A DNA stretch of 64,000 nucleotides from contig CDRNVI010000053.1 in the NCBI GenBank assembly GCA_977017575.1, positions 868,001 through 932,000 of the forward strand, in the 5' to 3' direction. Shown piece by piece: positions 6,793 through 39,300 of the stretch. Each line of letters starts with the position of its first letter. Position 1 is the first letter of the stretch. Made by a program: the position numbers and the translations under genes. The notes beneath the pieces are model-generated. The model saw nothing but the letters and a program-made list of their open reading frames with translations. It did no database searches and was not told the DNA's origin. Source of the DNA: Paramoeba atlantica (Eukaryota > Protista > Discosea).

Positions 6793-6966
6793 CTTTTCGC
6801 TGAATCTACAATGACGTAAATCTAATACTTTTCATGACCAAATATCATATCTTCTACCCTTTACGAAAATTTACGCGCTCCAATAAGGTCCTCACCAACC
6901 TGCTTTATCTCACTCTTCCCTACGTTTCTCTCCCTTTTCTTACCCTCTGCCCCCCCCCTCTCCTCC

Positions 6967-7908
6967 ATGTCCCGCTACCTCCACACCCTCCCCCACTTCA
7001 CCGCGTGCCCCAAACCCTGGAACGACTACCTCTCCCTTCTCACCAAACACGACACCCCCCCCTACCCCGCCTCCCCCCTCGAGGCCCCCATGTACCGCGG
7101 TCGCAAACGCGGCCCCGAGGGCTGGCTCGCCGGGGAGGCCATCCAGCTCCACTACCACCGTTTCCCCGACGAGCACCTCTTCTGTTCCCTGAACCGTTGG
7201 CGCCTCGGCGACCTCACCGGGGACCTTGCCCTGCAGCAATTCCGTAACGCCCAGCCCCACCCCTTACTCGACCACGACACCCACCACCTCTCCTCCCCCG
7301 ACGCCGAGGCCTTTCTCAAATTAAACTTCAAAAACCCCAAAGTCTTTGCGCGGTACCTCACCCGCGCCGGGACCCACTACCCCCGGGACACGCTCAAGAT
7401 CTCCCCCGAGGCCCACAAGCGGCTCTGCGCCGCGGTGGTCCAGGCCAAGACCCTCGGGCTGTTCCCGAAGCACGGCAACCCGTTCTGGCACCGCCTGCAG
7501 CGGGACAAGCCCCGGGCCTACTGCGCGGCCTACGAACCCGACCACGCGAGCACGCGGCAGACCATGGAGCAGTTCTGCTTCCACTGGCTGCAGACGCACC
7601 GCATTAAAGGGTACTTTGAGGGGAGGGAGGAGGCACGGAGGGCTCGGGGGATGACGAGTGTGCGACCGAGCCAGCGTATGATGGAGGGGGGGTATGAGGT
7701 GCGGACGAACTATGAGCGGCGGCAGGAGGGGAAGGTGCCACGGGGTCCGTTGACCGGGGTGGAGCATAGGGTGGTGGGGAGTACGAAGGAGACGAAGGTG
7801 CCGGGGTTGATGTCGGCGGCGGGGTTGAGGAGGAATCCGTTTCTGTGGGCGTCGGATCGGAAGAAGAGGATTGGGTTTAGGAATGTGTTTGAGTTTAAGT
7901 TGATTTAA
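6967..7908 (+). CDS. MRPS18: mitochondrial ribosomal protein bS18m, kinetoplastid-type extended form
   Basis: S18 core LNFKNPKVFARYLTRAGTHYPRDTLKISPEAHKRLCAAVVQAKTLGLFP embedded in a 313-aa protein, as in trypanosomatid bS18m. Confidence 0.85.
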   Translation: MSRYLHTLPHFTACPKPWNDYLSLLTKHDTPPYPASPLEAPMYRGRKRGPEGWLAGEAIQLHYHRFPDEHLFCSLNRWRLGDLTGDLALQQFRNAQPHPLLDHDTHHLSSPDAEAFLKLNFKNPKVFARYLTRAGTHYPRDTLKISPEAHKRLCAAVVQAKTLGLFPKHGNPFWHRLQRDKPRAYCAAYEPDHASTRQTMEQFCFHWLQTHRIKGYFEGREEARRARGMTSVRPSQRMMEGGYEVRTNYERRQEGKVPRGPLTGVEHRVVGSTKETKVPGLMSAAGLRRNPFLWASDRKKRIGFRNVFEFKLI

Positions 7909-8172
7909 GGAAAGGGGCGGTGGGGGATACGGAGGTGGTGGTGTGTTTCGTGGAGGTGATGTGTACTTTGTGGTTTCGTGGGTAGGTTTTTTTAAACGCA
8001 TGTTTATTCAACTGTAGTTATTCAACGGTAAGCGGACGTGAATATGCGGACCGTCATAAAGGACGACCATGTACATGCGTGCATGGTGCATCGAGTCATA
8101 AAAGGTGCCCGATTTAGCCGACTTCTTGTACATATTGAAACGAATTTCACTTTTGTTCCTTAATTAATTTTT

Positions 8173-9702
8173 ATGCCGGCTCGTTTTGAAAAACTGTCTC
8201 GCTTGGGTGAAGGAACTTATAGTATCGTGTATAAGTGCCGCGACCGCTCCAATGATAGCTGCGTTGTGGCTGTTAAAGTCATTCGACCTCAACTCTCTTC
8301 TGTTGAAGATCAGCTACACTGTCAAAAGCGTCGAGTATTGCGCCATCGCAGAGCCAGTTCCGTACCTTCGGGCTCAAGTAAAGAAGTCCCGGATTCTTTT
8401 GAGACGCTCACTAAAGATGTGTTACAATACGACGAAGGCCTCGCGTACTCTGACTCTGATCAAACTTCACTTTCAAGCTCTTATCTCTCTGATGACTGTG
8501 AAAGTGCGGCTTCTCCGGACGATTACGACTCTACATTCGTTGACCTTGTCTACGATCGTCTCCATGTGTCGAAGAGAGGAAAATTTGATCGTCCCTTACC
8601 TAGCATCCGACCGAAGACTCCTTCCTTTTCTCCCTGTCTTATTCCAAGCACAACCCTTCGTGAGTGTGCCATACTTCGCTCACTACCGCCTCATCCTAAT
8701 ATTGTAACGCTGTTCGAAATAATATCCTCAGACGTCGAATCCCCATGGACACGAGTGCTAACACCTGCAAAACCTCAACACAAGGAAGAGACGAACTCCA
8801 GACGACGTACTCAATCTGTGCGAGCTGAGTCTCGATCACGTCCGTCGTTGTCCAGTCCCATCTGTATGGTGTTTGAATATTTACCTTTTGACCTGCGCCG
8901 TGCGCTAAATACCCACCCGAATCATTTTTCGTTAAGTGTTTGTAAATCCCTATTTCACCAACTTTTATTTGCTACTCGGCATCTTCACCTCCATGGGATT
9001 TATCATCGCGATATTAAGCCGCATAATATTTTACTCAACGCAGATCTTACGGTATCGAAGCTGACAGATTTTAACCTGAGCCGTCTGGAGACGGGGTCTC
9101 GATGGGAAGATCGGCTTCGCGAGCCCTTTACAAATACTGTCGTTACTTTATGGTATCGTTGTCCAGAGGTCATCTTGGGTTCCACCGTCTATGAGGGAGG
9201 AGTCGATATGTGGTCACTTGGCTGTGTGCTGTATGACTTAACCCATCCGAAATCTCGACCCATTTTTGCAGCCCACACGGAGATTGAAATGTTATTTCGT
9301 ATTTTTCACCTTTTTGGCACGCCACAGTGTGGAGGTACAGGACTTACGTGTCGTGCTACACGTAAAAGTGGTTCTTTAGATGTGAAAAAGAGTCAAATTT
9401 CTTCAGACGCTGAAAATGAATTCAACTTTAACCAAAAAGGAACGTCAAAAAGGAACGTTCGCAATCACTTGCCTAATCAGCCTATTGACTCAGAATTCTT
9501 AAATCTTTGTCAGCTTTCTGGATTTTGTTCACATTTTCCAAAGTGGCCAGCACCAATTATTGATGAGGAGTGGTGGAGTAAAGTAGCTCCTAATTTGGAC
9601 TCAGGTGGGCGTGATTTATTTTTGCACCTCCTTCAACCGGAACCTCAGAATCGCATTTCTGTAGCTGCTGCTTGTTCTCACCCTTGGTTTTTTTGTTCCT
9701 AA
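8173..9702 (+). CDS. CDK-like (cdc2-related, CMGC) Ser/Thr kinase with large insertions
   Basis: LGEGTYSIVYKC, VAVKVI, PSTTLRE (PSTAIRE-like), HRDIKPHNILL, DFN in place of DFG, VVTLWYRCPE, DMWSLGC. Confidence 0.9.
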   Translation: MPARFEKLSRLGEGTYSIVYKCRDRSNDSCVVAVKVIRPQLSSVEDQLHCQKRRVLRHRRASSVPSGSSKEVPDSFETLTKDVLQYDEGLAYSDSDQTSLSSSYLSDDCESAASPDDYDSTFVDLVYDRLHVSKRGKFDRPLPSIRPKTPSFSPCLIPSTTLRECAILRSLPPHPNIVTLFEIISSDVESPWTRVLTPAKPQHKEETNSRRRTQSVRAESRSRPSLSSPICMVFEYLPFDLRRALNTHPNHFSLSVCKSLFHQLLFATRHLHLHGIYHRDIKPHNILLNADLTVSKLTDFNLSRLETGSRWEDRLREPFTNTVVTLWYRCPEVILGSTVYEGGVDMWSLGCVLYDLTHPKSRPIFAAHTEIEMLFRIFHLFGTPQCGGTGLTCRATRKSGSLDVKKSQISSDAENEFNFNQKGTSKRNVRNHLPNQPIDSEFLNLCQLSGFCSHFPKWPAPIIDEEWWSKVAPNLDSGGRDLFLHLLQPEPQNRISVAAACSHPWFFCS

Positions 9703-10090
9703 AGTTGTTCCTAAAGTTTCCTAAACTTCCTAAAGTTGTTTGCTTCATAGCAAAACTTTTAATGTGAGCATACATGTATATTTCTTCAACTTGCTTTGAT
9801 ATCACTTGCCAACATTGCTTTTTTTTGCTTTTTTGAACACATCATGTGTGTCGTCACAATAATCATTTTTCATTTTGATTTACGCCTTGCACTCAAACTG
9901 ATACTGAAAATTGTATGCCACTATATTATCACCTGTGTTTATTTTGCCACATGTACTACTGTCAACTGTCTACTGTGTTTTACGCCTTCGATAGTGCTTA
10001 CATGGCTTTTTACTAAACGAAGTTTTTTTGATAAAAGTTCTTATTTCAATTCTCAAATACATGTAGGGTTGCATTCAGTAATCTAAAACT

Positions 10091-10870
10091 ATGATTCCTA
10101 GTTCTTCAATACCTCAAGACGACGCTAGATCTGTGGATTCTGAAACAGACAATGATACTGAGGTTACTTTTCTCGTAGAGGAGACTCAAGTTGTGAATTC
10201 AGCTATAGGTAACTCTTTCTTGACTAACAAAAGCCCAACGCCTACTGAAGATCGTAAAGAGAACCTTATCGCACCTACTTCGACGGCTGAAGCTGATGAC
10301 ACGAATTTTCATATGGAACAGGATATAGAGGAAGGTGAAGTTCAATTTATCCTTCCTGAATCGGAAGGTGCTGCACACGCTTCGTTGGATACGGATGTAA
10401 ATCTTGATTCCGAGATTTCTGATACGAAATGGGATCCTAAAGGTGTGATTCCTGAATTACCAACCCACCGTGTAGGACTGACATTAACTCCCTCCATGCT
10501 GGGATACGACATGAAAATCATGCACGATCGTCCCTGGATTCAAAATCCGGAAACCCTACCACAGTACTTTAATTATGGATTTGATGAAAAGAGTTGGACG
10601 AAGTATATACAACTTCACTCACGCGGCTCGCAGTCCCTCCTAGAAAAAGCGAACGAGCAAATGGACGAAAGAAGTCGTCCGCATCTATCGACCCCGAGTG
10701 GAGCAGGGTGTCGTATTCGCACCGTGGGTCAACAGTCATCCAATAGAACTGCAAAACGTATCCATACGAGTCAAGAATCTGTTTCTCATCCAAAGTACTA
10801 TTCAGAGACCCGAGATATCCCTAAACCAGGAACAAAAAAATTCCGTCCCGTTACACGCGGCTCTTCGTAA
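10091..10870 (+). CDS. FIP1: pre-mRNA 3'-end processing factor Fip1
   Basis: Fip1 motif RPWIQNPETLPQYFNYGFDEKSWTKY, preceded by an acidic N-terminus. Confidence 0.85.
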   Translation: MIPSSSIPQDDARSVDSETDNDTEVTFLVEETQVVNSAIGNSFLTNKSPTPTEDRKENLIAPTSTAEADDTNFHMEQDIEEGEVQFILPESEGAAHASLDTDVNLDSEISDTKWDPKGVIPELPTHRVGLTLTPSMLGYDMKIMHDRPWIQNPETLPQYFNYGFDEKSWTKYIQLHSRGSQSLLEKANEQMDERSRPHLSTPSGAGCRIRTVGQQSSNRTAKRIHTSQESVSHPKYYSETRDIPKPGTKKFRPVTRGSS

Positions 10871-11105
10871 ACTGTTTTATACATTCAATTTCTAATTGAT
10901 TTGAATGGACCACTTAAAAAGGCCACTACGGTCTCTGTTTAATAATTTCTGAAGTGACTTTTCATTTCAGCTGCCTTCACAACAAAGCAAAATTATTGTT
11001 TTCAAAATAGCCTTTCATACTACAGTGACCACTGAACACAAAACAAAACAATTCTCTGCCTTTCTTTGTTTTAATAACAAACAGAACCCTCCTCTTACTT
11101 GCAGA

Positions 11106-11990
11106 ATGGCTGAGTACACCCCTTTGCTTTCCAAAGTGCGAACGTTACAGCAGTTCGCACGCAACACTCTGCAGTCCGTTCGTGACGAACTGACCATGGG
11201 AAAGCCACCCACTCAGCCGATTTCCTCTTCTGTGAGTGTGCCTCGTGAGGAGAGTAGTTTGCTCACCACAAGCAAACGCTCCACGCGGCGAAAATCGGGG
11301 GAGGGGAAAATTCCTTATCCGACCGAGGCACAGCTCTCGGTGCTCCCGGGGCGCTGGGCGCGTCTTTACGAGGCGCTATGGAAACTCTCCACCTACCCCA
11401 TGAGTGCTCCTTTTTTATTTCCCATTCACGAGATGTACACCCCGGAGTCTCTGGTGGGGTACGACAATGTGATTCAACACCCGATGGATCTACGCACGGT
11501 TTTAGGGCGAATTCTCCATCGACGCTACACCTCGGAGGATCAGGTCTATACGGATTTGTGTTTAATTGCCTCGAATTGTGAGCTTTTTAATGGCTCCAGT
11601 CACCCACTGGTCACAACCAACGTAAAACCGTTTCGTGAGGAGGTAGATGCGATATGGAAGGGCTTATATCCCGGGGCGATGTTGCCACGGGCTGCCTCCC
11701 GTTCGTTGCTTTCGCGCAGCCACTCAAGGGAGCTGGCGCCGGAGTACGTCGTGTTGCGGGAACGGGTGAAGGCACGGATCGAGAAACTGCAGGAGAGGGA
11801 GCCGGAAGGTATGGAAGAGCTTTTGGACGTGATTAATCGTGAGGCGCCACAGGCTATGGCTCCGGATGAGGACGGGGATATCGTTTTGAACTTGGAGGAA
11901 CTTACCGACCCTGTGCGACTCCAGAAAATTGATTCGTATTTGGCGGTAAAGCTTGAAAGTTCAGCGGAGGCAAAGCGACAAAAGCGATAA
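11106..11990 (+). CDS. bromodomain + extra-terminal (ET) domain protein (BET-like bromodomain factor)
   Basis: Bromodomain SAPFLFP...YDNVIQHPMDLRTV...DLCLIASNCELFN with the conserved Asn. C-terminal ET-like IEKL...EELLDVINREAP...DGDIVLNLEEL...LQKIDSYL. First ATG 11106. Confidence 0.85.
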   Translation: MAEYTPLLSKVRTLQQFARNTLQSVRDELTMGKPPTQPISSSVSVPREESSLLTTSKRSTRRKSGEGKIPYPTEAQLSVLPGRWARLYEALWKLSTYPMSAPFLFPIHEMYTPESLVGYDNVIQHPMDLRTVLGRILHRRYTSEDQVYTDLCLIASNCELFNGSSHPLVTTNVKPFREEVDAIWKGLYPGAMLPRAASRSLLSRSHSRELAPEYVVLRERVKARIEKLQEREPEGMEELLDVINREAPQAMAPDEDGDIVLNLEELTDPVRLQKIDSYLAVKLESSAEAKRQKR

Positions 11991-12423
11991 CGCTTTGTAT
12001 CAACCGCAACTAGTTTATTCATGTTCATTTTTTTCACCTTTTACAGGCGTGAATTATATGGGCGTTTGAAATAAAGCTCCATCTTTCCATACTTTTTTAA
12101 ATTTGTCTTTCAAGTTTTTCCAAGCCACATCAAGTGCATTTTGAGCTTTGTCATTTTGTTCTCATCCACCATCCTTGCGATAGGAAGTTCGGTTTTATCG
12201 CTTGTTACATGTTTCCCTATTAGTCACTTTGGGGTTTTTCTCGTCCCGCAAATTTTTATTATCACCTTCTCTTCGATTTCTATTGATCTATTTTCATAAA
12301 CACTGTTTTTTCTATTAGCAAATTTGCCACGCAGCTTATCTTTATTTTGGTTTTAAGTTGACTTGTCTAGCCTTGGGTATCTTTCATGAATGTAGCGACC
12401 TTAGTTTCTAGCGTGCAAGTTGT

Positions 12424-13308
12424 ATGTTGCAGAACGCTAGGTTAACGCAATTTTGTGCAGAAATGAAGTCTTTTCGCGATCTCTTTCCGCTCTCTGTTCT
12501 GTATGACATGCGTTACATAGCTTTCGGCTTTTTCCTGGGGAAATCAGTTTTGTCTACAGTCTCGTTTTGTCGTGTAGCAGGTGGTTCCATGCATCCTACC
12601 CTTCGTGAGAGCACAGGTGATATTGTTCTGCTGTGGAACATTAATTCTATTCGGCATTTTTTAGCTCTTTCAAATAAAGCTTTAGCACTTCAAAAAGGGG
12701 TTATTTCTGCAATAAAACATAATTTTTCAAGCGGAGAAAATGGTGAAAATAATTTTTTAAACAGTGATTCCGATCACCTAAATACTTCTGAGGAAGAAGA
12801 GGAATTTGGAGGAGTAAAAAGAAGTGGTGCTTTGCTTCATAGCTCTGAAGCATGCGATCCTTGCTCAACTGCTCTGACAAGAGGTGCGATTTATGTCCTC
12901 TGGCACCCATCTCGTCGGTACAGAATTATCAAACGACTTCGATGGTTAAGTGGTGATATCATTCATCTACCTGAGTTCGCCTCCTACGATATCCCAAACG
13001 TACAGAAGAAAAATCATATTTCTTTAGTCTCATCAACTTCCACTTTTGCTGATTCGGAACATCGATTCGATAACGTAAATAATCATTTATCTGGTACGCT
13101 ACTTTCAGAGTATGAAGATACTCTCCCTAATTCAGCAGAATGTTATCATATTCCTTCACAACATATATGGGTGCAAGGAGATAACCGAAACACATCGGAA
13201 GATTCTCGTACGTATGGCGCTATTCCTTTTGATGCACTCATAGGGCGTGCAGTTGCAATAGTGTGGCCACCATCAAGATTTTCTTTTCTTCCCACTTTAG
13301 AAATTTAA
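12424..13308 (+). CDS. mitochondrial inner membrane peptidase (IMP1/IMP2, peptidase S26)
   Basis: Catalytic Ser box GGSMHPTL, Lys box IIKRL, and IWVQGDNRNTSEDSRTYGAIP...GRAVAIVWPP. Confidence 0.9.
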   Translation: MLQNARLTQFCAEMKSFRDLFPLSVLYDMRYIAFGFFLGKSVLSTVSFCRVAGGSMHPTLRESTGDIVLLWNINSIRHFLALSNKALALQKGVISAIKHNFSSGENGENNFLNSDSDHLNTSEEEEEFGGVKRSGALLHSSEACDPCSTALTRGAIYVLWHPSRRYRIIKRLRWLSGDIIHLPEFASYDIPNVQKKNHISLVSSTSTFADSEHRFDNVNNHLSGTLLSEYEDTLPNSAECYHIPSQHIWVQGDNRNTSEDSRTYGAIPFDALIGRAVAIVWPPSRFSFLPTLEI

Positions 13309-13537
13309 CATTGTTCGACTTGAAATGCATTACTGTTTCTTACGCGACGGATTAATCAAGGAATGTCCTCCGTGAGAGCAGAAGCGTTCCTCCTGAACTC
13401 TTTTTGAGCTCACATTCAGAACGCCATTTCTAAAACTGAAAAATAATTGTCCAATATTTTTCTTCCCGACATTATGGGAAGATGCGAGTGAAGCATCGCA
13501 ATTTTGAAACAATTATTTATTAAGACTTCTTCGCCCC

Positions 13538-19853: not shown

Positions 19854-20387
19854 AGATTGAACGCTATATTTAATTGGATATTCAAACAACGTAGCAAGTT
19901 TCGGATTAGTTAGCGCTCAAATTTTGGTCATTATTATTTTTTCTGCCGAGTTATGTCTACATCACGGTTAAAAACAGTAGGCTTGTATTTTTTAGGTTAA
20001 AAGCATATCGCTATCTGGTACTCACAAAGTTTAAAACATTCTTTACCTTTTACAGTTTCCCTCTTTTATCCTCCATATGCGTTCATGTTTTTTAATCCTT
20101 CATTTTCTAAATTTTGTAATCACTTTAAAGTGTGCTAAACTAAGTTAAGTGTTTCTAAAAGTGCCATAAAATGTGTAAAATACAAAATCCTTAGAAGGGT
20201 TGCATTGGTCCCTAATATCATGCAGAGCTTTGAACTGCGTGCAAGGACTTGATTTTTCTGATTCTTCACTTTTTTTGCATTAATCACTTTTCTATTTTTC
20301 TTCTTTTAGCTAACGAAGTCTATTTGTAATGCATTACTACCATGCAATTCTACAAGAACTGAATCCTCATCTGGTCTTCGCATTATC

Positions 20388-21937: not shown

Positions 21938-23466
21938 AATGGGGGGGCGGATATAGTATATATCGTATATACATTTATTGTATGTACATTATTGTATATT
22001 ATATCGTATATACATTATTGTATGTATTTTCTTTTTTAGGCTCTTCGTTAAACGCGGTGGTTGCTTTCAACTTAGAAGTCACTCATGCTGCGCGCTTCGC
22101 GTTGAAAACTCCCGCCGCGTTTAACGAAGAGCCTAAAAAAGAAAATTTAGCCTGGAAAACGGAAAGATTATAACCAAAAATAGCCGAATTTCGGGTACAA
22201 ATGGGGTCATTTTCGCATATTTTTGCTCTCAGAGCACTAAATCCGACATTTGCGCGTGGGAAATCACTCGCAGGCATGAATGAAAGCCTACCGAACGTAT
22301 TGGGTAGAGAATGCGACTCCAACCATACCATTCTTTCGACAAAAATGCCCCTTTAGGTCCGAAAAATACTTTTTCACCTTTTTTAGTCAAAAATGGGTCA
22401 TTTTGGGGGGCGCACCACAGTTCGAAGAAGTGATACCTTGCGAAAACAACTGCGTAGAAAGCTAGTGTAGGTCCCAAACTATCAAAATACAATAGGGGAA
22501 ACGATTTTGGAAAAATATTTTTTTTGTCATTTTTTTCGCCAAGTTGAAATTTTTTTCAAATTTTTTTTTCCGAAAAAATCCGAACTTGGCGGACCCGTCC
22601 TGCGGATACGCGGTGGGGTCACCCCCGGGTAGGGGGGTGGAAAATGCGCGCCAAGACCCCGGCTACCCTTTCTGCGGTTTTTTTTCGAAAACTAATTTTT
22701 TCGAAAAAATTTGCTCGACCATGCCCCCCCCCTGGACCCCCCCCATGGACCCCCCATTTTTTTCAATTTTTTTTTTCAGTTTTGGACCACCGGAGCCCCC
22801 TTTTATATTTTTTTCTTCTATTATATTACTGTGTTCCCCTTTATATTTTCACTGTTTTTGTTCACTTTTTTTTCAATAATCGAGTGTAGAGCGGTAGTTT
22901 TACAACCACCGCAATATGTATAGTATATATGTATATGTACATATGGGCGGATATGTATATTACGCTTGCAGATATATATTACCATTCTAGTTTTCTAAAG
23001 TTTCATAGCACAACTGAAGTGAAAATGTATCGCATATCCCTCTAAGATTGCAAGAAACGCGTGAAGCAAGGGATGGCAAAGGAGGTGAAGAGTAGGAATG
23101 CCCCTCGAATGATAAAGACAACTGCGGTTTCTGCGATTTGGATAGAAACCTGAACTGGGACGACAAGGTCGAAGCCTCCTTGTCATCCTCCCTAGCATTT
23201 GTGTGGGTGAAAGTATACTTTTGAAGGCAACGGGCCCCTAGGCGTCTTCCCCAGCAGTACCATTTTAGTGTTCGTACAAGCGCCTACCCCCCAAATTGCC
23301 TTAAATGTTATATTTTTGAATTTGAATGTCGTTCCCCCACTTGAATATACAATGTGCGTGCAGCATTTTTCGCAATATAAATACTCTTGCAGATTTATAT
23401 TACCATTCTACCTAAACCAGATCTATACTACCAAAAAAAAGCGTAATATATATCCGCACCCCCCTT
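21938..23466. mobile_element. TA-flanked TIR element (AAGGGGGG family) hosting an ~890-bp insertion
   Basis: TA|AATGGGGGGGCGGATATA ... TATATCCGCACCCCCCTT|TA. Similar termini at 55842-57183. Confidence 0.6.
22027..22914 (+). mobile_element. ~890-bp non-coding dispersed element, copy 1 (palindromic 5' end, hairpin 3' end)
   Basis: Near-identical to 60991-61879 (+) and 56224-57123 (-). 119-bp palindrome at 22027-22145 and terminal hairpin GCGGTAGTT-TTAC-AACCACCGC. Confidence 0.9.
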
Positions 23467-23563: not shown

Positions 23564-24298
23564 ATGCCACCCCGTGGCAGGCCTACCTCATCATCCTTCC
23601 GCACTTCCTACGAGCTCTCTCAGTTGCCTCCTGCCGAGATTCTCTCTCCAGACTCCTTTCTGTTTCCTCCCCGACCCATCCCAAGACCCCAACCTAAAAC
23701 CGCTACACAGCAACTTCTTGCAGAATCCTTTTTGCAGCTTGAGCGTCGGTACGCGACCTCTACATGGAGAAAACTCTCTCATGCCACAGGACTTGATGCC
23801 TCTACCCTATCCGATCGAGCTTGTCCTCAGGACACAGTACGGGCAGGAAAGATTCAACCATCCACTATGGAGATTTCTCCCTTTCTGCCCACTTTTATGG
23901 CTATGGAAGAGACCTGCACGGTGATGTGCTCTTCCCCTAAGTTATCACAACTTCACGCTGCCAACTGTTCTGTTAATTCTCACAATGTTTCCTTTTTGTT
24001 ATCTCTCTCCACACAATCTCTTTTTCAACTTTTGTCTCGACATTCGAGACGTAATGATGCGTCGTCGAAGTCCAGTCACTGGCGAATTATGTCCCAGGCG
24101 GCACGACAGGAGGAACGCTGCCTGGAACGAATTCCAATCCCTCGTAGAGGGGTTGGAAATGAAGAGGCCTTTTTGGGCAAAGACGGCGAGAACGTATTCG
24201 ACACACTGAGGGAAAATATTGTCTGGGATTCCTTTTTGGGCGATGAAGATGATGGGGATCTGGAATCTGACGTGCAATATGAAGATTACTTTCCTTGA
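23564..24298 (+). CDS. hypothetical protein, possibly RNA polymerase III subunit C31/RPC7-like
   Basis: N-terminal MPPRGR..SF...LFPPRPIP pattern and acidic C-terminus ending EDDGDLESDVQYEDYF resemble RPC7. The identification is tentative. Confidence 0.5.
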   Translation: MPPRGRPTSSSFRTSYELSQLPPAEILSPDSFLFPPRPIPRPQPKTATQQLLAESFLQLERRYATSTWRKLSHATGLDASTLSDRACPQDTVRAGKIQPSTMEISPFLPTFMAMEETCTVMCSSPKLSQLHAANCSVNSHNVSFLLSLSTQSLFQLLSRHSRRNDASSKSSHWRIMSQAARQEERCLERIPIPRRGVGNEEAFLGKDGENVFDTLRENIVWDSFLGDEDDGDLESDVQYEDYFP

Positions 24299-28030: not shown

Positions 28031-28284
28031 TCCTCTTAACGCAAAACTTGTGCAGTCCCCCTCTCATTATTTTCAATAAATGACTCCTGACATTTTCTTT
28101 CAAAAATTTATAACTACTTTTGCAAAAGTTAATCCTTTCGTTCTGATTCACGCTCTTTTTATATCTTTTTTATCACCCTATTTTAAACCCAACCCTAACA
28201 CTCTTTCCCTAACTCTCTCTTTCTCTTTTCCTCTCTCTCTCTTTCTCTTTTCCCCTCTCTCTCTCTCTCTCCTTTCCTCCCTCC

Positions 28285-29481
28285 ATGTCCCACCGCAAAT
28301 TCGAGCACCCCCGGCACGGCCACCTCGGCTTCCTCCCTAAGAAGCGCTGCCGCCACATCCGCGGCCGCATCCGCTCCTTCCCGCGGGACAACGCGGCGGC
28401 GGCCCCCCACCTCACCGCGTTCATGGGGTTCAAGGCGGGCATGACGCACATCGTGCGTGACATGGACCGCCCCGGGAGTAAGATGAACAAGAAGGAGGTG
28501 GTCGAGGCGGTGACCATTGTGGAGACCCCCCCGATGATGGTGGTGGGGTTCGTGGGGTACCGCGAGACGCCGAACGGGCTGCGCTGTGTCGGGTCGATCT
28601 GGGCCCAGCACCTCAGTGATGAGTGCCGCCGGCGGTTCTACCGCAACTGGCGCAGCAGCAAGAAGCGGGCGTTCAGTAAGTACAGTTTGAAACTGGCGAC
28701 GCAGGAGGGGAAAGGCGCGGCGGAGAAGAAGGAGGGGAAGATTTTGGAAAGTGCCACGGTGCTTCGGGTGATTGCGCATACGCAGATGCGGAAGCTCGGG
28801 AACCCGCATGTGGGACAGCGTAAGGCGTTTATTACGGAGATCCAGGTCAATGGGGGTGAGATTGCGGACAAGGTGGCCTACGCTAAGGGGTTGTTGGAGC
28901 GAGAGGTCCATGTAGGGTCTGTGTTTCAGCAATCCGAGTGTACGGATATCTGCAGTGTGACGCGTGGGCACGGGTTTGAGGGTGTGATCCAACGATGGGG
29001 AGTGACCCGTCTTCCGCGCAAAACCCACCGTGGTCTTCGTAAAGTTGCGTGTATCGGAAGTTGGCATCCCGAGCGCGTGTCGTTTACCGTCGCGCGAGCC
29101 GGACAGCATGGTTTCCACCATCGTACGGAGCTCAACAAGAAGATTTATCTCATGGGCCAATCTCTCGCGGAAAATCCTCACACTGCGAAAACCGAGTACG
29201 ACATCACGGAGAAGTCCATCACTCCGATGGGAGGGTTTCCGAAGTACGGCACCGTGCGAAATGAGTTTCTGATGCTAAAGGGTTCTATTGCGGGTCCTGT
29301 GCGACGTTCGGTTACGTTGCGTCGTCCGATTGCGCCACAGACCTCTCGTGCGTTACAAGAGAAGGTGACCATGAAGTTTATTGACACGTCCTCGAAGCGA
29401 GGTCATGGACGCTTCCAGACGATTAAGGAGAAGAACCAGTTTGTGGGTACGCTGAAGAAGCACGGTCTACGCCAAAAGTAA
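28285..29481 (+). CDS. RPL3: 60S ribosomal protein L3 (uL3)
   Basis: MSHRKFEHPRHGHLGFLPKKR, AFMGFKAGMTHIVR, LPRKTHRGLRKVACIGSWHP, FIDTSSKRGHGRFQT. Confidence 0.99.
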   Translation: MSHRKFEHPRHGHLGFLPKKRCRHIRGRIRSFPRDNAAAAPHLTAFMGFKAGMTHIVRDMDRPGSKMNKKEVVEAVTIVETPPMMVVGFVGYRETPNGLRCVGSIWAQHLSDECRRRFYRNWRSSKKRAFSKYSLKLATQEGKGAAEKKEGKILESATVLRVIAHTQMRKLGNPHVGQRKAFITEIQVNGGEIADKVAYAKGLLEREVHVGSVFQQSECTDICSVTRGHGFEGVIQRWGVTRLPRKTHRGLRKVACIGSWHPERVSFTVARAGQHGFHHRTELNKKIYLMGQSLAENPHTAKTEYDITEKSITPMGGFPKYGTVRNEFLMLKGSIAGPVRRSVTLRRPIAPQTSRALQEKVTMKFIDTSSKRGHGRFQTIKEKNQFVGTLKKHGLRQK

Positions 29482-29883
29482 GCGAGAAGTAAATCTTGGC
29501 GAAGCTAGAAGTTGAAAGTTAGAAGACAGAGCACCGGAGATGGATTTTTTTATTGAGGTGAATTCATATTTTGGTCTTGAATAATAAAGTATTCCAAGTG
29601 ATTTTTATGACTCAATTTAGTCTTAGTCACATTCCTTTTAGCCCTATTATTGTTTTAGTATTTTCCATCTGAAAGTTACTCAGACCTTTGTGCGGATTCT
29701 AATACGCGAACAATCTGTGCTGATTCCAATATATTTTTTGATACTCAACACTGCGACACACTGATACACTCTGCCGTCACCGTAGGAATTTTTGTTTCGT
29801 TTATACATGTAAATAATTTTCATCTCTGTTCTTGTACTCACGTTAATACACATCTCGACTTTTTTTCTGTACAATTTGTTTCA

Positions 29884-31443: not shown

Positions 31444-31719
31444 CAGTAGTATAAGTTAGGCAAGTTTAAATATTGACTTCAGTACTTTTCAAACGGCATG
31501 ACATTGTTGCGCATTCTTTCGCAAAATATTTTCGCGATATTATTAGAAGACGCATCACGAATACTTTCCTATTATTTTCCGAGAAAACCGTTTGATTTCA
31601 CTTCCCGTTTATGATGGATTTCAAAAGGCGCATTCATAATTGTCAGTCCGTGTTTAATTAGTTTATTTCTAAGCTTACACGCATTGTGAATTTCGATAGC
31701 CTTTTGATACATCTTTTTT

Positions 31720-34700
31720 ATGGCGACTGAAAGCAATCGAGAGCTTTTCTTATCACGCATTTCGAAATCTCGCCCTTTTTTGGGTCTTGATAGCGAAAGC
31801 CTTGATGTTTGCATCTGCATTTGTGTTGGCGCTCTATCTTCGGACAGTCCCGAAAATCAGAAATCCGTTGCTTTAAATACGCATTTTCTAGGAAGCGCTG
31901 CGCAGCGAACACTAATTGTCCTTTCTTCAACAGAAATGTATCTTTTTTCCGAGTCTGAAACGGATACGATGGACCTTCACAAGGACTATTTTCTTATGGA
32001 TGATGGCAACCCTACTCCGAATGTACATTGGCAACCTGTTTCGGATTCTGATGCTTCCCCTACGCTTGAAACTACATTGTCTAAATTTTCCAAAGTAGGA
32101 TACATCAAAAAGGAGCTAACTTATCAAGAAGGATATCTTGCTCTTGCTTTTTCACAATTTGTGAACCATCATTTGAAAGCACAGGAAGTCCAGAATTCTG
32201 ACGCTATCGAAGTAACCGTAACAATCGAAGATGTAGCCGCCAAAGTAAGCGAAGTTCTTGTTCGAAAAGACACCAAAGCTGTGGATGCTATGAGAAAAGC
32301 AGGATCGTTTGCCTCTGTCATTACTAAATCCATGATTTTCCCCCGTTTAGATGAAATTTTGTCCAATGACGTTGAAATACCTATGAGTGAGTTCGCACTT
32401 CAGATTGAAGACTGTATTCGACATCCTAATAAAATTTCTGGTCTTGAAAGCTTAATGGCAAAAAACTATGGCATTGCCATTGAGCCTGCGGTTATTAAGG
32501 GAGGTGGCGGACCTCTAAAATTGATATACGATGATCCCATTTCAGACAAGCCCATAGCACCTGGTATTATTATTTCAGCGTACGGAGTTCGCTACATGGG
32601 TTACGTTGGTTACATAGCTCGTAGCTTTTTGTACAACACCACCAAGGCACAGCAGGATGCATATTCGAGTCTGCTGGCACTAATGGATTGGCTTACGAAT
32701 GCGATGCGCGTCGGAGAGACGGTAAAAAACATTTACAGCAAAACCCGGACATGGTATGTAGATGCTTATCCTAATCTACATTCCTATTTAGGCCGGTCCT
32801 TCGGATTTGGTATTGGCCTTGAAATTATGGCGTCAAGTATGGCACTGACCGAACGTAATTCTCGTATTTTAGAAAGCGGAATGACGTTCGCCATTCGGCT
32901 AGTACTTGAAGACGTTGTGAATGAAGGAAAGAAATTTTCTCTTCTACTAGCTGATATGGTACACGTTCGAGCGGAAGAGGATTCAGTGGAGGTCCTAACA
33001 CAACGTGCACCATCGGATCTTCGTGATGTTGTGCGCCAAATTGGAGACGACAGTTCTTCCGAAAGTGAGGCTGGAGAGGAGCCAGCCCCAGAAGGAATTG
33101 CTCTAAGGCTTCGAAACTCCGGCCGCAATAGTGGTGCAGCATTGCAACAGGAAACCTTGCGGAAGGAACAGCAACGGAAGATAATGGAACAACGGCGCCG
33201 TGACGCGGAAGAACAACAGGGTCAACAAGTGAAAAAGGAAGAAAAGGATTTTACGGAGATTGCAAAATTGGCGAAGGGTGATTTGAAACCTCTTACCAAT
33301 GCCAATGAATCATATCTTTCTTCGTTCGCTTCTCGTTATGGTTGTGGAATTCATATTGATCAAAGTCGAGAACTGATTCTTTTGCCAGGTCTCATAAATC
33401 CGCATACTTTGACTCCCATTCATTTATCAATGATACGAACAGTCGAGTCGAAAGCAGAAGGTTCAGATTTCACACTGCTTCGCCTGCAATTTCATGCCCT
33501 TCAAGATACCAATGCCGCATATAGGTGCAATAAGAACTCTACTTTCTTGCGCGAAATTTCATACCGAATTAAAAAAGGAGTTGAAGCTGGCAACATTGCA
33601 CGAGAAATTAAGACTATTCAAACGTTAATTAAGCAACGTGAGACGGCCCGTAAAGCTCAAGGCGACGTTATTGATCAGCAGGGTCTAGTAATGTCTCGCA
33701 CACTTGACAAAATTCTCAAAGATGTGAAATGCTACCCGAATCCTCGTGTTTCATCTACCGGACGGAGCACTGGGGTTCCCATAGCTGGCCACTTGGAGGT
33801 ACATGTAAACGGTACTCGCTATGTTCAACGTGACTCGAACCCTCTTATTATTTTGTTTAACAATGTAAAAACATGCATTTTCCAGCCCTCTGAAAATGAT
33901 CCCAAAGTTCTTCTTCATTTTCACTTGAAGCAGCCAATACAAGTCGGAAAACGCAAGACGGTGGACGTCCAGTTTTATTTGGATGTCTCGGATGAAAGTG
34001 ATGTCGCACATTATGGACACACTCGATGGGAAGATGAAGTTGAACAGGAAGAGCACGAACGACAGCGCATATCTCGTCTAAATTCTGAGTTTCTTCATTT
34101 TTCAAAAAAGCTAGAAACTGCACTGCAACGGCGCGTCGAGACACCTTTACGTAAATTTCACTTCTTTGGCACGCATGACAAGGCTATGGTAAAATTCAAA
34201 GGCTCGGAACGCACCCTATTTAGCCTTTGTGAAGCCCCCGTTTTTGTACAAGTCATGCAGGACGTTCAAATTGCCGTATTCGAACGCGTTACAGATATGA
34301 AGCGAAGTTTTGACGTGACTTTTATTCGCAACAATTACACTACTGTGACGATTAATAACATTGAATTCAAACTCCTTGACAAAGTAAAAGATTGGTTAAA
34401 CGAGGCAAAAGTGAAGTACTACGAGATGGGAGTCAATCTTATGTGGAAATCAATTCTGGGTGATATTAAGGACGATCCAGAATGGGATCCTTGGGGCCAT
34501 GAAGGATGGGATTACATTTTAAATGATGATGGGGACGGAAGTGACGACGATAGCGACGAGGGTATGGACAGCGACTCCGAGTACGTTTACAGCGAAGATG
34601 ACAGCGATACCTCAGACGACAGCATTGATTCCAAATTAGTGAGTGAGGAAAGTTCGGAATATGAGCCTTCCTCTGAGGCTACGGAAGACAGTGAGGAGGG

Positions 34701-34848
34701 GATGGATTGGGACGACTTGGAGCGCAGAGCAGCTTCGGAGGATAGACAACGTGGGAATGAGTCAGATGACTCCCGGCGAGCGAAAAAACGGTCTCGGGAG
34801 AAGGATCGGAGTGTTAGATCAGGTAAGAATAAAGGTCCGAGTCGGTGA
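31720..34848 (+). CDS. SPT16: FACT complex subunit Spt16
   Basis: Peptidase-M24-like domain (RYMGYVGYIARS, FGFGIGLE), middle domain (GHLEVHVNGTRY, LHFHLKQPIQVGKRKTVDVQFY), PH domain and acidic C-terminal tail. Confidence 0.95.
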   Translation: MATESNRELFLSRISKSRPFLGLDSESLDVCICICVGALSSDSPENQKSVALNTHFLGSAAQRTLIVLSSTEMYLFSESETDTMDLHKDYFLMDDGNPTPNVHWQPVSDSDASPTLETTLSKFSKVGYIKKELTYQEGYLALAFSQFVNHHLKAQEVQNSDAIEVTVTIEDVAAKVSEVLVRKDTKAVDAMRKAGSFASVITKSMIFPRLDEILSNDVEIPMSEFALQIEDCIRHPNKISGLESLMAKNYGIAIEPAVIKGGGGPLKLIYDDPISDKPIAPGIIISAYGVRYMGYVGYIARSFLYNTTKAQQDAYSSLLALMDWLTNAMRVGETVKNIYSKTRTWYVDAYPNLHSYLGRSFGFGIGLEIMASSMALTERNSRILESGMTFAIRLVLEDVVNEGKKFSLLLADMVHVRAEEDSVEVLTQRAPSDLRDVVRQIGDDSSSESEAGEEPAPEGIALRLRNSGRNSGAALQQETLRKEQQRKIMEQRRRDAEEQQGQQVKKEEKDFTEIAKLAKGDLKPLTNANESYLSSFASRYGCGIHIDQSRELILLPGLINPHTLTPIHLSMIRTVESKAEGSDFTLLRLQFHALQDTNAAYRCNKNSTFLREISYRIKKGVEAGNIAREIKTIQTLIKQRETARKAQGDVIDQQGLVMSRTLDKILKDVKCYPNPRVSSTGRSTGVPIAGHLEVHVNGTRYVQRDSNPLIILFNNVKTCIFQPSENDPKVLLHFHLKQPIQVGKRKTVDVQFYLDVSDESDVAHYGHTRWEDEVEQEEHERQRISRLNSEFLHFSKKLETALQRRVETPLRKFHFFGTHDKAMVKFKGSERTLFSLCEAPVFVQVMQDVQIAVFERVTDMKRSFDVTFIRNNYTTVTINNIEFKLLDKVKDWLNEAKVKYYEMGVNLMWKSILGDIKDDPEWDPWGHEGWDYILNDDGDGSDDDSDEGMDSDSEYVYSEDDSDTSDDSIDSKLVSEESSEYEPSSEATEDSEEGMDWDDLERRAASEDRQRGNESDDSRRAKKRSREKDRSVRSGKNKGPSR

Positions 34849-35306
34849 TGATGATCTCTAGACCACATCTCTGTTCAAACGATATTGTAGTGTTGTTTTT
34901 TATTATCCACACATCTTTGTTGCATTTTACATCTTTTGTAGGATTTCAATGTTTCGTACCTTTGAAAATACTTTTCGTATTTCTCATATGACTTTAAACA
35001 ATATTGCGGATTACAAATATTTTGGGATATCACAACAGAGCAAGTCTGTTTTTTTATTCGGAACTAATTTTTACGTTGCACTTCGTACCTGTAGTCTTTA
35101 AAAGTTATTACTATGAATAAAGTTCGTTTTCTTCTACACTCCTTTAGTTGATTATACATTGTAGATTTCACAATATCAAACTTCGTATGAAGTTTATTCA
35201 AGAACGTCGCTCGAAAAGTTTTTTACGGTTCTGTACCTCTACTTATAGATATGTACAATTCTTGCTTCTAGCATTTTCTACTTTGCCATTCATATTTCTT
35301 TAGTTA

Positions 35307-35669
35307 ATGCTTCGTCGAACGTTTCTTGGCCGTTTTCAGATGAATAAAGGTCCTCAGTACCCAGGACCTACTCTTGCGGGCTGGGGAAGAACTACTCAAA
35401 AACGTCGACTTGAATATGAAACCACAGAGAGCCGAGTTCACAAGCGAATGTGCGCCCCAGGAACGGAACTTGCAGGTTATGAAAGTCGAACCACAGATTA
35501 TATGGAAATGCGTGTTTGGTCAGGATGGCCTGGTCGTATCGGACTTTGGCTTACAAATTTTTCAAAACACTATGCATTAATGTTTCTTCCTGGATGTGGT
35601 CCTCTTTTTTTGGTATACTATGGTGCGTATAAATATGACCAAGCTATGCAACGCTGGGCATGGTGGTGA
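35307..35669 (+). CDS. small mitochondrial membrane protein, possibly cytochrome bc1 subunit QCR8-like
   Basis: MLRR-type presequence and a single C-terminal TM helix (YALMFLPGCGPLFLVYYGAY) whose position resembles QCR8. The family call is tentative. Confidence 0.6.
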   Translation: MLRRTFLGRFQMNKGPQYPGPTLAGWGRTTQKRRLEYETTESRVHKRMCAPGTELAGYESRTTDYMEMRVWSGWPGRIGLWLTNFSKHYALMFLPGCGPLFLVYYGAYKYDQAMQRWAWW

Positions 35670-36112
35670 GCGATTTGAAACTGTGGCCATGTTTTTAAGG
35701 TTTTATGTGAACGTAATCTTATATACTATCTGTCCACATTCATTATTTATTTGTTTCACTCACGCACAGCATTTTTTATACACTATGTATAAACAGGTAA
35801 ATGCATGAACCACATATTTTAAGTTTTCCTTGGATTTTTTTGTGAAGTCACCTAGTACTGATTTTGCATATTTTTTCAACTGAAATTTCTGAATATTACC
35901 TTCCTTTCGTGTTGCGTACTCATTTATATTTATGTACGCATTCGTGTATACATAACTAGATTGTGTAGCGCATTTCATATAAACAGAAATATACGTTACA
36001 TACGATATAAACAAAACATATTCTTACGTTTTTATCCATAATTACATCTTATAAACTTTTATAAACACACAAACTCTTTTTTTAGAAGCTTAGTTTTCTG
36101 CACTGTGTTTAA

Positions 36113-36472
36113 ATGACTGATCCATATACTAGAGAGGATGACTTACGTTATCAGCGCTTTTGTTCTATCCCAACTCAGGAACTTACAAGAGAGCAAAGGA
36201 ATGAATTCGCGCACCTGAAAAATAAGCATGAGCGCTTCGTGAAACGAGGTCTCCGCATTTTGAGAACTCGTACAAGGAAACACAGTTCTCATTATCCGCT
36301 TGAAGAATCACTTTCGGCGGGTCATATTCATTCACAAAAGCCTGTGCGGTCTGATAGAGGGTCACATTTGGGGTCTCCTTTGGGTATCTTTACAGCACTC
36401 TGGAAGTCTTTTCGTCATTTTTGCGAACAGCAAAAATCCTCTAAAGTCACTTCTGATCGTAAAAATAGATGA
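36113..36472 (+). CDS. small hypothetical protein
   Basis: 119-aa ATG ORF on the array strand. No motif. Confidence 0.5.
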   Translation: MTDPYTREDDLRYQRFCSIPTQELTREQRNEFAHLKNKHERFVKRGLRILRTRTRKHSSHYPLEESLSAGHIHSQKPVRSDRGSHLGSPLGIFTALWKSFRHFCEQQKSSKVTSDRKNR

Positions 36473-36810
36473 GCTTTCGTTTGTGTTTGAAGTTACGCCT
36501 CAGTCGTGTGTATTTCCAGTGTTCTTGTTATTTCGTATATTAAATCTTTTTGTTCTTGTGCATACGTAGAAATAGAATCTGATCCACTGGAAATCATGGA
36601 ATTTGAAACACACATTTTATAGCATAGAAAAATGAAGGAAACGCTAACGAAATGCTTATACGCTTTTTTTTATTGGTTGATGGAAAACTTGCTCAATTTT
36701 AGTTCATGATTAATCCGTGTAAACATTTATGTGTGCTTATACGTGTATGAGCATGTATCTAGGTTTTTTTGCCTATTAAACCGTACTCTTGGTATAATTT
36801 ATCTCACTTT

Positions 36811-37119
36811 ATGTTGCGTTCTCGTGTTCTTCAGGTTGGGGTGGAAGGTGGCGTTCCTTTGAGCGTTATTCACGACTCAAAATACTTAGCGCACCGCCTC
36901 AGGACCTTAGGACAAAGCGAAAAAACTTGGAAACCATCTTTACTAACAGACGAAGAAGTGCAACGGTTGGCAATCTCAACACATTCTCCAGAGAGCTACT
37001 TTAACAAAAAGCGCGGAGTAACCGACCCAGAGTGGGTTGTACGAGAAGATATCGAGGCTAAACATAGTCCCACACGCTACGGAGATTGGGAGAAGAATGG
37101 AAGATGTATCGATTTTTAA
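36811..37119 (+). CDS. SDHAF4: succinate dehydrogenase assembly factor 4 (DUF1674)
   Basis: C-terminal signature PTRYGDWEKNGRCIDF. ATG at 36811 gives an MLRSR presequence. Confidence 0.9.
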   Translation: MLRSRVLQVGVEGGVPLSVIHDSKYLAHRLRTLGQSEKTWKPSLLTDEEVQRLAISTHSPESYFNKKRGVTDPEWVVREDIEAKHSPTRYGDWEKNGRCIDF

Positions 37120-38091
37120 TCATCTCTATTTGTGATAGAGACGATAGCACCTCGATTGCCTCAACCGACACGTAGAGTATACCAACGCAAATTAATGCAA
37201 TAATTAGTTTTTCAATATATTCCGCACTAAGTAACGTTATTTCCTAATTGTTGCGTGGACGATAGTCACTGAAAGGATATACAGTATGCAAAAAAACTGT
37301 TCACATGTTTGACACTTTTTTGTTGTTGGTATTTCCCTGTGGCCAGGTGTCGTGTGCATTGAAGTAGTATAACAGAGTAGTGTACGCGTGGGTACTAGGT
37401 ATATGTTGCCATAGAGCTTCCGACTCAATCGGCTTTGTAACAAAAGTGTGATCATATGCAAGTAAAGAAAAACATGTGAACAGTTTTTTGCAATTTCGAG
37501 GTAAGATTTTTTAGGCGAAAAACACAATTTACTGATGCATAAAAACGAAGTATGTACCTTCAAATGAATACTAGCGTAACTCTTTCTTGTGTCTTGATTG
37601 ATGTCTATATGCGCCTACGCATGCTGTCGACCAAGGAATGGCTTAACCTTGTGGTATGCTTGCTCATTCCTATTTGACCTGACTTTAGAGCTCCAGAACA
37701 CCTGTGAATCGAGTTGCGCGACTCGCAATTGTTCTTTTTGAATGTTCTCTGCATGTGTTCTGGGGCTCCGAGGTGCGCCTAATGGGCTGTACATTCAAAA
37801 ATCTTGTAAATCTCATTAACAGAGAAGATCTTCGTCAACTTGCGACGCGAGCTCTCCTCCCCCGTTCATCTCTGGCAAATTCAGACCCCCATGTAATCCA
37901 CTCATTTTGAGCGGCTAATGGCATAGTGTGGCATTATTCTTCATTATTATCGTATGAAAAATCAACGAACAGTTCAGTATTCGTGTACGTACATACATGT
38001 ACATAGAATCTTACATACCATGGCATCTTTTCACTGTAACGCAAAAATGACCTTCAAATATAGTTTTTTTGTGCTTGTCCTTACTTCACCA

Positions 38092-39300
38092 ATGTCAACC
38101 GACGCTTCGAGCGCTCCAGCTACCCAAAGCGACGACTTTCTAATTACCACCACCGGTGGCTCCATGGTCTCCAGCCTTTGCTTCGCGGAACCACCCGGGA
38201 TGCCCTCCGTCATGGCCTACACCACCTGGGACGGTTCCGTCTCCGTATGGAGTCTCTCCACCACAACCAACTCCCTCGGTGTCGTCACCTCCCTTACCCC
38301 CTCCCCACTATGGGAACTTCCCACCCCCACAGGCTCCTCCCCCAGCAACACTGAACTCCTCTCCACGCCGCTCTCCTCCTCCCCCTCCGTCCCCTCCTCT
38401 CTCCCCTCCACCGTCACATCCACACTCGGCGCTACCACGCCCCCACCCACACCCTCCCCCTCCCCCTCCCCCTCCCCTCTGCTGTGCTCCACCCTCACCC
38501 CCGCGGGCCATCTCTACCTCGGCGGCTGCAGTCACTACGTCCACCAGTACAACCTGGCGGCCCCTGACTGTACCCCTACGGTGGTGGCCCAGCACGACGC
38601 CCCGGTCCGCAGCCTGGCCTGGATCCCCCAGGTCGGGCTTCTCGTCACCGCGGGGTGGGACGCCCTTGTGCGGTTCTGGGACACCCGGCAGTCGCGTCCC
38701 ACCGCGGAGGTGCGCTGCCCGGGTCCCATCCACGGGATGGACTTCTCGTTGGCCCCGAAAGCGGCGATTCTGTGTGCGCGCCGGGTGTTGCTGTATAACA
38801 TGGTGTCGATGGGGATTGCGGCGGAGCTGGAACCGTACACGGCGGTGCGTCACCAGATGCGGTGTGTGGCGTTGTCTCGGGATGGGGAGGCGGTTGCGGC
38901 GGGGAGTGTGGATGGGAGGGTTATGGTGAAGTTTATCGACCCCTCCCAGGAGAAGAAAACGTTTAGTTTTAGAGCCCACGCGGATCCGGGTCGTGGGGAG
39001 GGGGTTTATCCGGTGAATAGTGTACAGTACCACCCACTGGGTACGCTGCTCACCGCAGGGTCGGACGGGGTTGTGAAATGTTGGGATGTGGAAGAGCGCA
39101 AAGAGTGCTCCTGCTTCCGTCTCGGGTACCTACCTATCTCTTGCGCGCAACTGAACACAAGTGGGACGCTTCTTGGGTTTGCGCTCAGTTATGACTGGAC
39201 CCGAGGGGCTCAGCACTATTCCCCGTCCCGTGTGGGAGGGGTGGTGGTCAAGGCCCTCTCTCCCAAGTACGTGAATAAGTATAACGCGGCGAAAAGATAG
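38092..39300 (+). CDS. RAE1: mRNA export factor Rae1/Gle2 (WD40)
   Basis: QHDAPVRSLAW, LVTAGWDALVRFWDTRQ, AGSVDGRV, FSFRAH, YPVNSVQYHP, FALSYDWTRG (Rae1 rather than Bub3). Upstream in-frame ATGs exist at 37954 and 38020. Confidence 0.85.
   Translation: MSTDASSAPATQSDDFLITTTGGSMVSSLCFAEPPGMPSVMAYTTWDGSVSVWSLSTTTNSLGVVTSLTPSPLWELPTPTGSSPSNTELLSTPLSSSPSVPSSLPSTVTSTLGATTPPPTPSPSPSPSPLLCSTLTPAGHLYLGGCSHYVHQYNLAAPDCTPTVVAQHDAPVRSLAWIPQVGLLVTAGWDALVRFWDTRQSRPTAEVRCPGPIHGMDFSLAPKAAILCARRVLLYNMVSMGIAAELEPYTAVRHQMRCVALSRDGEAVAAGSVDGRVMVKFIDPSQEKKTFSFRAHADPGRGEGVYPVNSVQYHPLGTLLTAGSDGVVKCWDVEERKECSCFRLGYLPISCAQLNTSGTLLGFALSYDWTRGAQHYSPSRVGGVVVKALSPKYVNKYNAAKR

Follow-up and report, generated by a model that had tools for sequence, protein, structure and literature searches.

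Why does the plus strand of this chromosome turn abruptly from C-rich to G-rich inside certain genes, and in that order? The question is raised by a 64,000-nucleotide stretch of contig CDRNVI010000053.1 (positions 868,001 to 932,000, forward strand; assembly GCA_977017575.1, catalogued under Paramoeba atlantica), hereafter the window. An original prediction, made from the letters alone, had described recurring GC-rich islands there, C-rich and then G-rich on the plus strand, and read them as chromosome-level cis elements such as fixed replication origins or bidirectional initiation sites. We find that each GC-rich domain, taken in full, matches a gene, a correspondence that the prediction had overlooked, and we read the islands as the footprint of mutation rather than as a selected cis element. 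Tentatively, we propose that in this deep-branching kinetoplastid lineage a previously undescribed, self-reinforcing mutational process may seize single genes of a polycistron and rewrite them strand by strand.

The window belongs to a kinetoplastid polycistron, with every long open reading frame (ORF) on the plus strand. Its proteins match those in trypanosomatid ribosome structures (uL3, E = 3e-182; mitochondrial bS18m, E = 2e-84), and the closest named relative is Perkinsela, with 58% for bS18m; a comparison of JBP proteins places the organism outside the Perkinsela cluster, beside a relative from sample ERZ25072283. The genome is AT-rich, with a background G+C of ~0.40 and a G+C at third codon positions (GC3) of 0.35–0.39 in ordinary genes. 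A flip scan (300 + 300 bp; standard deviation, SD, of scores 27) over the whole 64 kb returned just three strong C-to-G peaks, at 38630 (score 162), 7550 (144) and 28450 (134), each 5–6 SD in height, so that the three flips predicted near 38.65, 7.5 and 28.45 kb are real and are the only strong ones in the window. The strong G-to-C peaks were in all cases the outer edges of these same three islands, and no free-standing G-to-C flip was seen in scans of the window or of an independent contig. Within the islands G+C reaches 0.60–0.77, against the background of ~0.40.

The three strong islands lie in the genes for bS18m (GC3 0.86), uL3 (0.73) and a RAE1-like WD40 protein (0.71). In 25-codon windows, the third-position counts of C and G in bS18m change from 20 and 3 to 0 and 22, and those of RAE1 and uL3 flip in the same way; third-position skew runs from −0.8 to +1.0 in bS18m, from −0.89 to +1.0 in RAE1 and from −0.57 to +0.7 in uL3. 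Fisher tests of third-position C against G, left versus right, gave p = 1 × 10−24, 5 × 10−6 and 5 × 10−16 for the three strong islands in that order, and codon permutation gave p ≤ 0.001, 0.018 and ≤ 0.0005. Amino-acid composition is rejected as the cause of these islands because the flip sits at third codon positions, in agreement with the earlier expectation that the signal would lie largely in synonymous sites. Across 22 genes, codon permutation identified C-to-G flips at p < 0.05 in six, namely the three strong islands, a bromodomain gene (p = 0.045), a weak case at 21.26 kb and the acidic tail of SPT16; a G-to-C flip at this level occurred in only one gene, which is the chance expectation. 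Three weaker cases had also been predicted, the third as no more than a possibility. The one near 11.4 kb (11100..11990, plus strand) is the bromodomain gene, where the flip is real, with a G-rich arm at 11625-11880, and weak, with a GC3 of 0.58. The one near 24.0 kb (23564..24298, plus strand) does not belong to the set, as its skew is restricted to codon positions 1 and 2 and reflects amino-acid make-up (GC3 0.45, p = 0.64), and the one near 46.8 kb has no significant flip (p = 0.15).

Island 1 (6880..8020, plus strand) covers the whole bS18m gene (ATG at 6967, stop at 7908) together with its flanks, which are C/T-rich on the 5′ side and G/T-rich on the 3′ side. Its GC change-points fall at 6942, 25 bp before the ATG, and at 7863; its C-arm extends to ~7540 and its G-arm occupies 7600-8020, with an overlap zone at 7420-7600 in which GC3 is ~1.0. 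Island 2 (28190..28980, plus strand) occupies the 5′ end of the gene for cytosolic uL3 (ATG at 28285, stop at 29481), where a CT-rich leader and a C-arm reaching ~28420 are followed by a G-arm to ~28980; GC3 then falls from ~0.95 to ~0.55 toward the 3′ end, and the G+C drop past the stop lies at 29539. Island 3 (38083..38940, plus strand) lies in the RAE1-like gene, for which homology places the ATG at 38092 and whose stop is at 39300; a C-arm at 38100-38580 and a balanced centre at ~38650 give way to a G-arm reaching 38940, and a milder GC3 tail continues until the stop. The arms, described beforehand as about 0.5 kb on each side, are not uniform and range from 230 to 700 bp; the flip point falls at 0.11–0.67 of the coding length, bearing out the remark that its relative position differs from gene to gene. 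At the island centres the arms overlap over 150–300 bp, and there GC3 is ~1.0 with C roughly equal to G.

The pattern recurs elsewhere in the genome. A public assembly, ERZ24900291, contains the same species, one of its contigs being identical to the window at 99.9%, and a different contig (L132, ctg3973l), found through its JBP homologue, carries three more islands in 25.8 kb; their flips score 170, 222 and 108 and have the polarity seen in the window. Polarity is thus C-to-G in six of six islands on two contigs, and island spacing is 5–20 kb. The additional islands lie in a tetrapyrrole-methylase-domain gene (a Pfam assignment), a second ORF and a 316-aa ORF; from reading alone we take the first to be RsmI-like, and the second, which has no Pfam match, is presumably GINS Psf3-like, judged by eye. 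The RsmI-like gene, which bears the strongest island, is split over three frames (L132 7080-7330), with both frameshifts at C or G homopolymer runs, and the split is either an assembly error or the mark of a pseudogene; a true pseudogene would make this island relevant to the selection hypothesis weighed below. The same contig encodes at 3821-6496 a JBP-type thymine dioxygenase with a Tet_JBP domain and a JBP1 DNA-binding domain, and base J is therefore probably made. Base J has been linked to G-rich DNA in Leishmania.

The GC-rich domains end where their genes end. The left GC change-point lies 9–55 bp 5′ of the ATG in all six islands, and the largest right-hand drop in G+C lies within 60 bp of the stop in five of six, which puts the GC borders at an ATG or stop for 11 of 12 edges; the probability that a random position lies within 100 bp of a start codon is 0.087. 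With such borders the islands are not landmarks of the chromosome independent of genes. The upward jump in G-C skew, a polarity known from origins and bidirectional promoters, is indeed there, confined to ~1 kb and to one gene. The skew reaches slightly farther than the GC domain: island flanks share it, being C/T-rich 5′ of the ATG and G/T-rich for ~80 nt 3′ of the stop, and in the last 40 codons of the upstream gene third-position C exceeds G at all six islands (mean C minus G +0.14, versus −0.02 in other genes; p = 0.0007). To the left of island 1, for example, a weak C-skew occupies the last 45 codons of the upstream gene (6658..6792, plus strand), where the third-position C frequency of 0.40–0.47 is in the 99th percentile. 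In the first 40 codons of the downstream genes no such spill-over was seen at any of the six islands. GC-biased gene conversion would give a smooth decay into the non-coding DNA on both sides; the GC borders at gene ends are sharp, yet a weak C-skew enters the upstream gene. Breaks at both edges of the gene with inward resection, which would fit the arms, predict G-skew in the upstream gene, and we rejected this model because the end of that gene is C-skewed.

The substitutions behind the flip are specific to strand. In the C-arms, 76% of 4-fold sites are C and 94% of codons ending in a pyrimidine (NNY) end in C, with just 59% of codons ending in a purine (NNR) ending in G (background 39%). 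In the G-arms, 84% of 4-fold sites are G, C is down to 4–9%, 97% of NNR codons end in G, and NNY codons are still T-rich. The same arm spectrum recurs in two further islands. The drive is therefore strand-specific and no plain AT-to-GC shift: background values nearly persist in the NNY codons of G-arms and the NNR codons of C-arms, in contrast to the symmetric shift that GC-biased gene conversion produces. The preference also changes over inside a single gene and is shared by codon positions 1 and 2 and by the flanks, in contrast to genes under codon bias. Compared with the relative, differing bS18m codons carry 39 C versus 14 in the C-arm and 39 G versus 15 in the G-arm; residue swaps along the skew include K to R and E to G, and in the C-arm of RAE1 a variable loop has become rich in Pro, Ser and Thr with its length unchanged.

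In the nearest available relative gene order is kept and the islands are missing, GC3 being 0.39 in bS18m, 0.38 in the bromodomain gene and 0.36 in RAE1. The suggested conservation check thus came out negative, and with no centre motif common to the islands at 8–10 nt, a fixed cis element finds little place. Milder gradients are present among the relatives. On one contig of the nearest relative (L133, ERZ25072283; 600-8000), which has a GC of 0.52 versus 0.38–0.41 in two other contigs of the same relative, gene after gene passes from C-rich at the 5′ end to G/A-rich at the 3′ end, with sharp resets that lie mostly in spacers, and a C-to-G gradient is found in seven of nine ordinary genes (p = 0.016). 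A weak gradient in the same sense is found in 10 of 12 ordinary genes of a Perkinsela-group genome (L002; p = 0.002). In that genome bS18m has a GC3 of 0.88 with no flip, the rise lying strictly inside the coding sequence, and it shows what ordinary codon bias looks like. Ordinary codon bias is rejected for the islands, whose G-arm NNY and C-arm NNR codons are unshifted, unlike those of the L002 gene. The gradient tendency is thus clade-wide, its extreme form is specific to lineage and gene, and island positions are not conserved.

Contigs from four runs resolve into two haplotypes with ~0.4% heterozygosity, as in a heterozygous diploid. Both indels between the haplotypes lie in spacers, one of 7 bp missing at 8079, just past the right edge of island 1, and one of a single T inserted at 10998. 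Between the window and the other assembly there are 14 differences, and a 320-bp part of the RAE1 C-arm (38240-38558) accounts for seven of them, all single-base and six involving C, and the remaining seven are spread over the surrounding 21 kb. We had considered the borders of such difference blocks as crossover points and dropped this reading because assemblies of a diploid mix haplotypes.

Nucleic acid structure accounts poorly for the islands. Canonical G-quadruplex (G4) motifs are limited in the window's islands to two minus-strand sites, 7055-7089 and 38440-38477, with no plus-strand canonical motif in any G-arm and none at all in uL3, and the paired G4/i-motif sites raised as one alternative thus fail. 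Long mRNA foldbacks, the other, fail as a specific design because the arms are no more complementary than shuffled ones (best 20-nt matches 14–16/20, versus ~15–16); predicted long-range pairs double in island genes, an increase explained by composition alone. CpG is not enriched (observed/expected 0.74–0.92 in islands versus ~1.05 outside), and tandem repeats inside island bounds are short low-complexity tracts only.

What kind of process would leave such a footprint? The pattern is its own reverse complement, and C at the 5′ end of a gene is therefore uninformative; the informative facts are that G accumulates on the outgoing strand, that A and C are lost there, that the signal stops at gene borders and that only the upstream neighbour is touched. 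Single-stranded DNA at human meiotic breaks loses C and A (PMC7615360), and the island spectrum appears to match this loss, with a geometry opposite to that of a central break. The exposed strand would be the outgoing one, as it is where transcription bubbles or R-loops diverge, or in a replication bubble. We infer, as a possibility short of a probability, that paired sense and antisense R-loops run outward from inside the gene and reinforce themselves. A strand-asymmetric substitution drive, acting outward from a zone inside the gene, would push short genes, or in slightly longer ones the first ~0.8 kb, to high G+C; on each side the strand leaving the centre 5′ to 3′ would lose A and C and gain G, and its partner would gain C. 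Over the 3′ arm, G-rich sense RNA would hybridise to the template and leave the plus strand single-stranded, and antisense transcription from the centre would likewise expose the minus strand along the 5′ arm, with damage to the strand so displaced being fixed mainly as changes to G. More G would make a stabler hybrid, and this feedback would carry whichever genes the process starts in to near saturation, which would explain both the saturation and the haphazard choice of genes. As in R-loop islands, the DNA is GC-rich, with G-rich non-template strands diverging from the centre. Among models that work outward from the centre, this one may best explain the borders: the right one would be sharp because the sense RNA is cut at its polyadenylation site, halting the right arm at the gene end, and the run-on into the upstream gene would be weak and leftward because the antisense RNA is unprocessed.

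Several observations weigh against this process. The GC border on the left matches the right one in sharpness, which would need constraint in the intergenic spacer. Protein evolution is not accelerated, with 11 versus 11 lineage-specific changes in a relative-rate test, and the drive would therefore pick among tolerated residues rather than override constraint. Diversity is not raised in the 1.1-kb bS18m island, which holds two of the 24 variable sites of 6000-11990; the RAE1 differences point the opposite way, and the site counts on both sides (24 and 14) are small. To our knowledge, antisense initiation at R-loops is known from mammals and not from kinetoplastids, and R-loops in Trypanosoma brucei are reported mostly between genes. 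Finally, damage to single-stranded DNA includes C-to-T changes, and a strong net AT-to-GC shift would be an unusual outcome.

Selection on the mRNA would account for the borders and for the clade-wide gradient. G/C-ending codons raise mRNA level in kinetoplastids; if they are sorted here to be G-poor at the 5′ end and C-poor at the 3′ end against local folding, the match of GC domain and gene at 11 of 12 edges, the weak like gradient in ordinary genes of L002 (10 of 12) and L133 (seven of nine), the GC3-rich bS18m of another species (0.88) with its rise exactly within the coding sequence, the unaccelerated protein rate and the low diversity of the bS18m island would all fit. Sorting C and G does weaken local folding (z = +4.9 in bS18m, +2.5 in RAE1), but island genes fold at −26 to −30 kcal/mol per 100 nt versus −18 in their AT-rich neighbours, and being far more structured than these they cannot have structure avoidance as their primary aim. 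Trypanosomatid genes of high expression do exceed their polycistron neighbours in GC3 one gene at a time, as L002 bS18m does; unlike the islands, they use C and G endings throughout, in the coding sequence only and without a flip. Selection on the mRNA also leaves unexplained why the NNY codons of G-arms and the NNR codons of C-arms show no shift to G/C, unlike in true codon-bias genes, why codon positions 1 and 2 and the flanks share the skew, why C-skew enters the upstream neighbour and why the relative's orthologues have no islands, and the RAE1-like, GINS-like and RsmI-like genes (the latter two by resemblance) are not obvious high-expression genes. We consider it unlikely. Recurrent recombination breaks inside genes, repaired from the homologue with GC-biased, strand-asymmetric correction of heteroduplexes, are rather improbable too. 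In synthesis-dependent strand annealing the new strand would leave the break 5′ to 3′, a donor G would turn an opposing T or A into C, and other mismatches would be restored; with a G-directed base-excision step this reproduces the left side, strong in T-to-C and weak in A-to-G, and its mirror image to the right. The lengths of the arms are those of conversion tracts, the diploid organism is heterozygous (two haplotypes, ~0.4%), a 7-bp indel polymorphism at 8079 lies just beyond island 1, and the RAE1 C-arm holds half of the 14 inter-assembly differences. Biased gene conversion is moreover known to leave GC peaks on the kilobase scale that approach saturation, as in the gerbil (PMC7403616). 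The hotspot peaks of dogs, birds and gerbils resemble the islands in being local, lineage-specific rises in G+C that alter amino acids, but they raise G and C alike, whereas the islands are strand-specific, flip at the centre and end at gene borders. Gene-exact borders and one-sided spill-over are not expected from such repair, which does not explain the depletion of C in the G-arms, and single-strand damage at a central break predicts the opposite polarity. Break sites, too, usually lie in nucleosome-free spacers rather than in coding sequence, and sex is unproven in the organism.

Fixed bidirectional origins, which would expose the lagging-strand template to either side of the centre, were the explanation first put forward for the islands, and we regard them as very unlikely. 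The polarity equals the upward skew jump of bacterial and human origins, the strand they would expose is the one that the observed spectrum calls for, and a spacing of 5–20 kb would suit. On the other hand, replication skew has no reason to end at gene borders or within ~0.5 kb, the spill-over is asymmetric, the islands are not conserved in the relative, and they share no motif. In the same vein, T. brucei origins mapped by sequencing of short nascent strands (SNS-seq), which give the only mapped origin topology among kinetoplastids, lie between genes and carry G4 and poly(dA) upstream on the plus strand (PMC13179062), with G-rich elements downstream on the minus strand, whereas all six island centres lie inside coding sequence. 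Both systems are kinetoplastid and have G-rich elements arranged strand-symmetrically about a centre, but the arrangement is opposite, the islands being C-rich upstream and G-rich downstream. The bidirectional promoters of vertebrate CpG islands, with their GC skew and R-loops, resemble the islands described here, as they too are ~1 kb long, GC-rich against an AT-richer background, C-rich then G-rich on the plus strand, and send out a G-rich non-template strand. The islands differ from these promoters in lying inside the coding sequence of a polycistron within the bounds of one gene, in their near-saturated synonymous skew and in their unenriched CpG.

Some features of the window and the public assembly stand apart from this argument. 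Short repeats of a 13-nt unit (C8 then ATGGA, 2.5 copies) occur at 22724-22755 and 61689-61720, and a G-rich 13–14-nt repeat at 56383-56429 supplies the sole plus-strand G4 motif of the window; each of these repeats lies within or beside transposon remains. Transposon ORFs offered no family useful for reaching more of the genome, and the one gene tested is single-copy. No tRNA or Rfam RNA genes were found in the window. A JGI transcript contig (L011) encodes an OST3-like protein identical to the one in the window; its positions 1-13 correspond to window 48395-48420, it begins with 7 nt that are absent from the genome and resemble the 3′ end of a spliced leader, and it gives untranslated regions of ~46 nt (5′) and ~320 nt (3′). 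A transcript search with a spliced-leader pattern that included these 7 nt returned chance hits only, and the RNA run X5 contains none of the sequence words sampled. In the public assembly, the gene caller has replaced bS18m and uL3 with antisense or out-of-frame ORFs inside the islands (L008 9149-9829 and L006 240-1166, both on the minus strand, and L008 8662-9075), which is why searches for exact copies of these two proteins come up empty. The practical effect is that gene callers choose the wrong strand within islands.

In full-text literature on kinetoplastid skew, Prokinetoplastina genomes, hotspot skew and positional use of C- and G-ending codons, we found no gene-bounded switch from C to G at third positions. 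GC peaks, skew flips and codon heterogeneity are each already known, but not their combination or its amplitude. Local strand asymmetry is the main clue, from sequence only, to where replication, transcription or recombination starts, and such skew signals usually amount to a few percent and need averages over many sites. Here a single locus passes from ~80% C to ~90–100% G at silent sites, and does so every 5–20 kb. Were selection on the mRNA the cause, the islands would represent a new rule of gene design in an organism whose expression is controlled after transcription. If instead strand displacement or biased repair is responsible, they would be an exceptionally clear natural record of it, including its reach into proteins, and if the process we propose is true, the islands would serve, in an organism without genetics, as a map of strand displacement, whether this occurs at R-loops, at antisense starts or in initiation bubbles.

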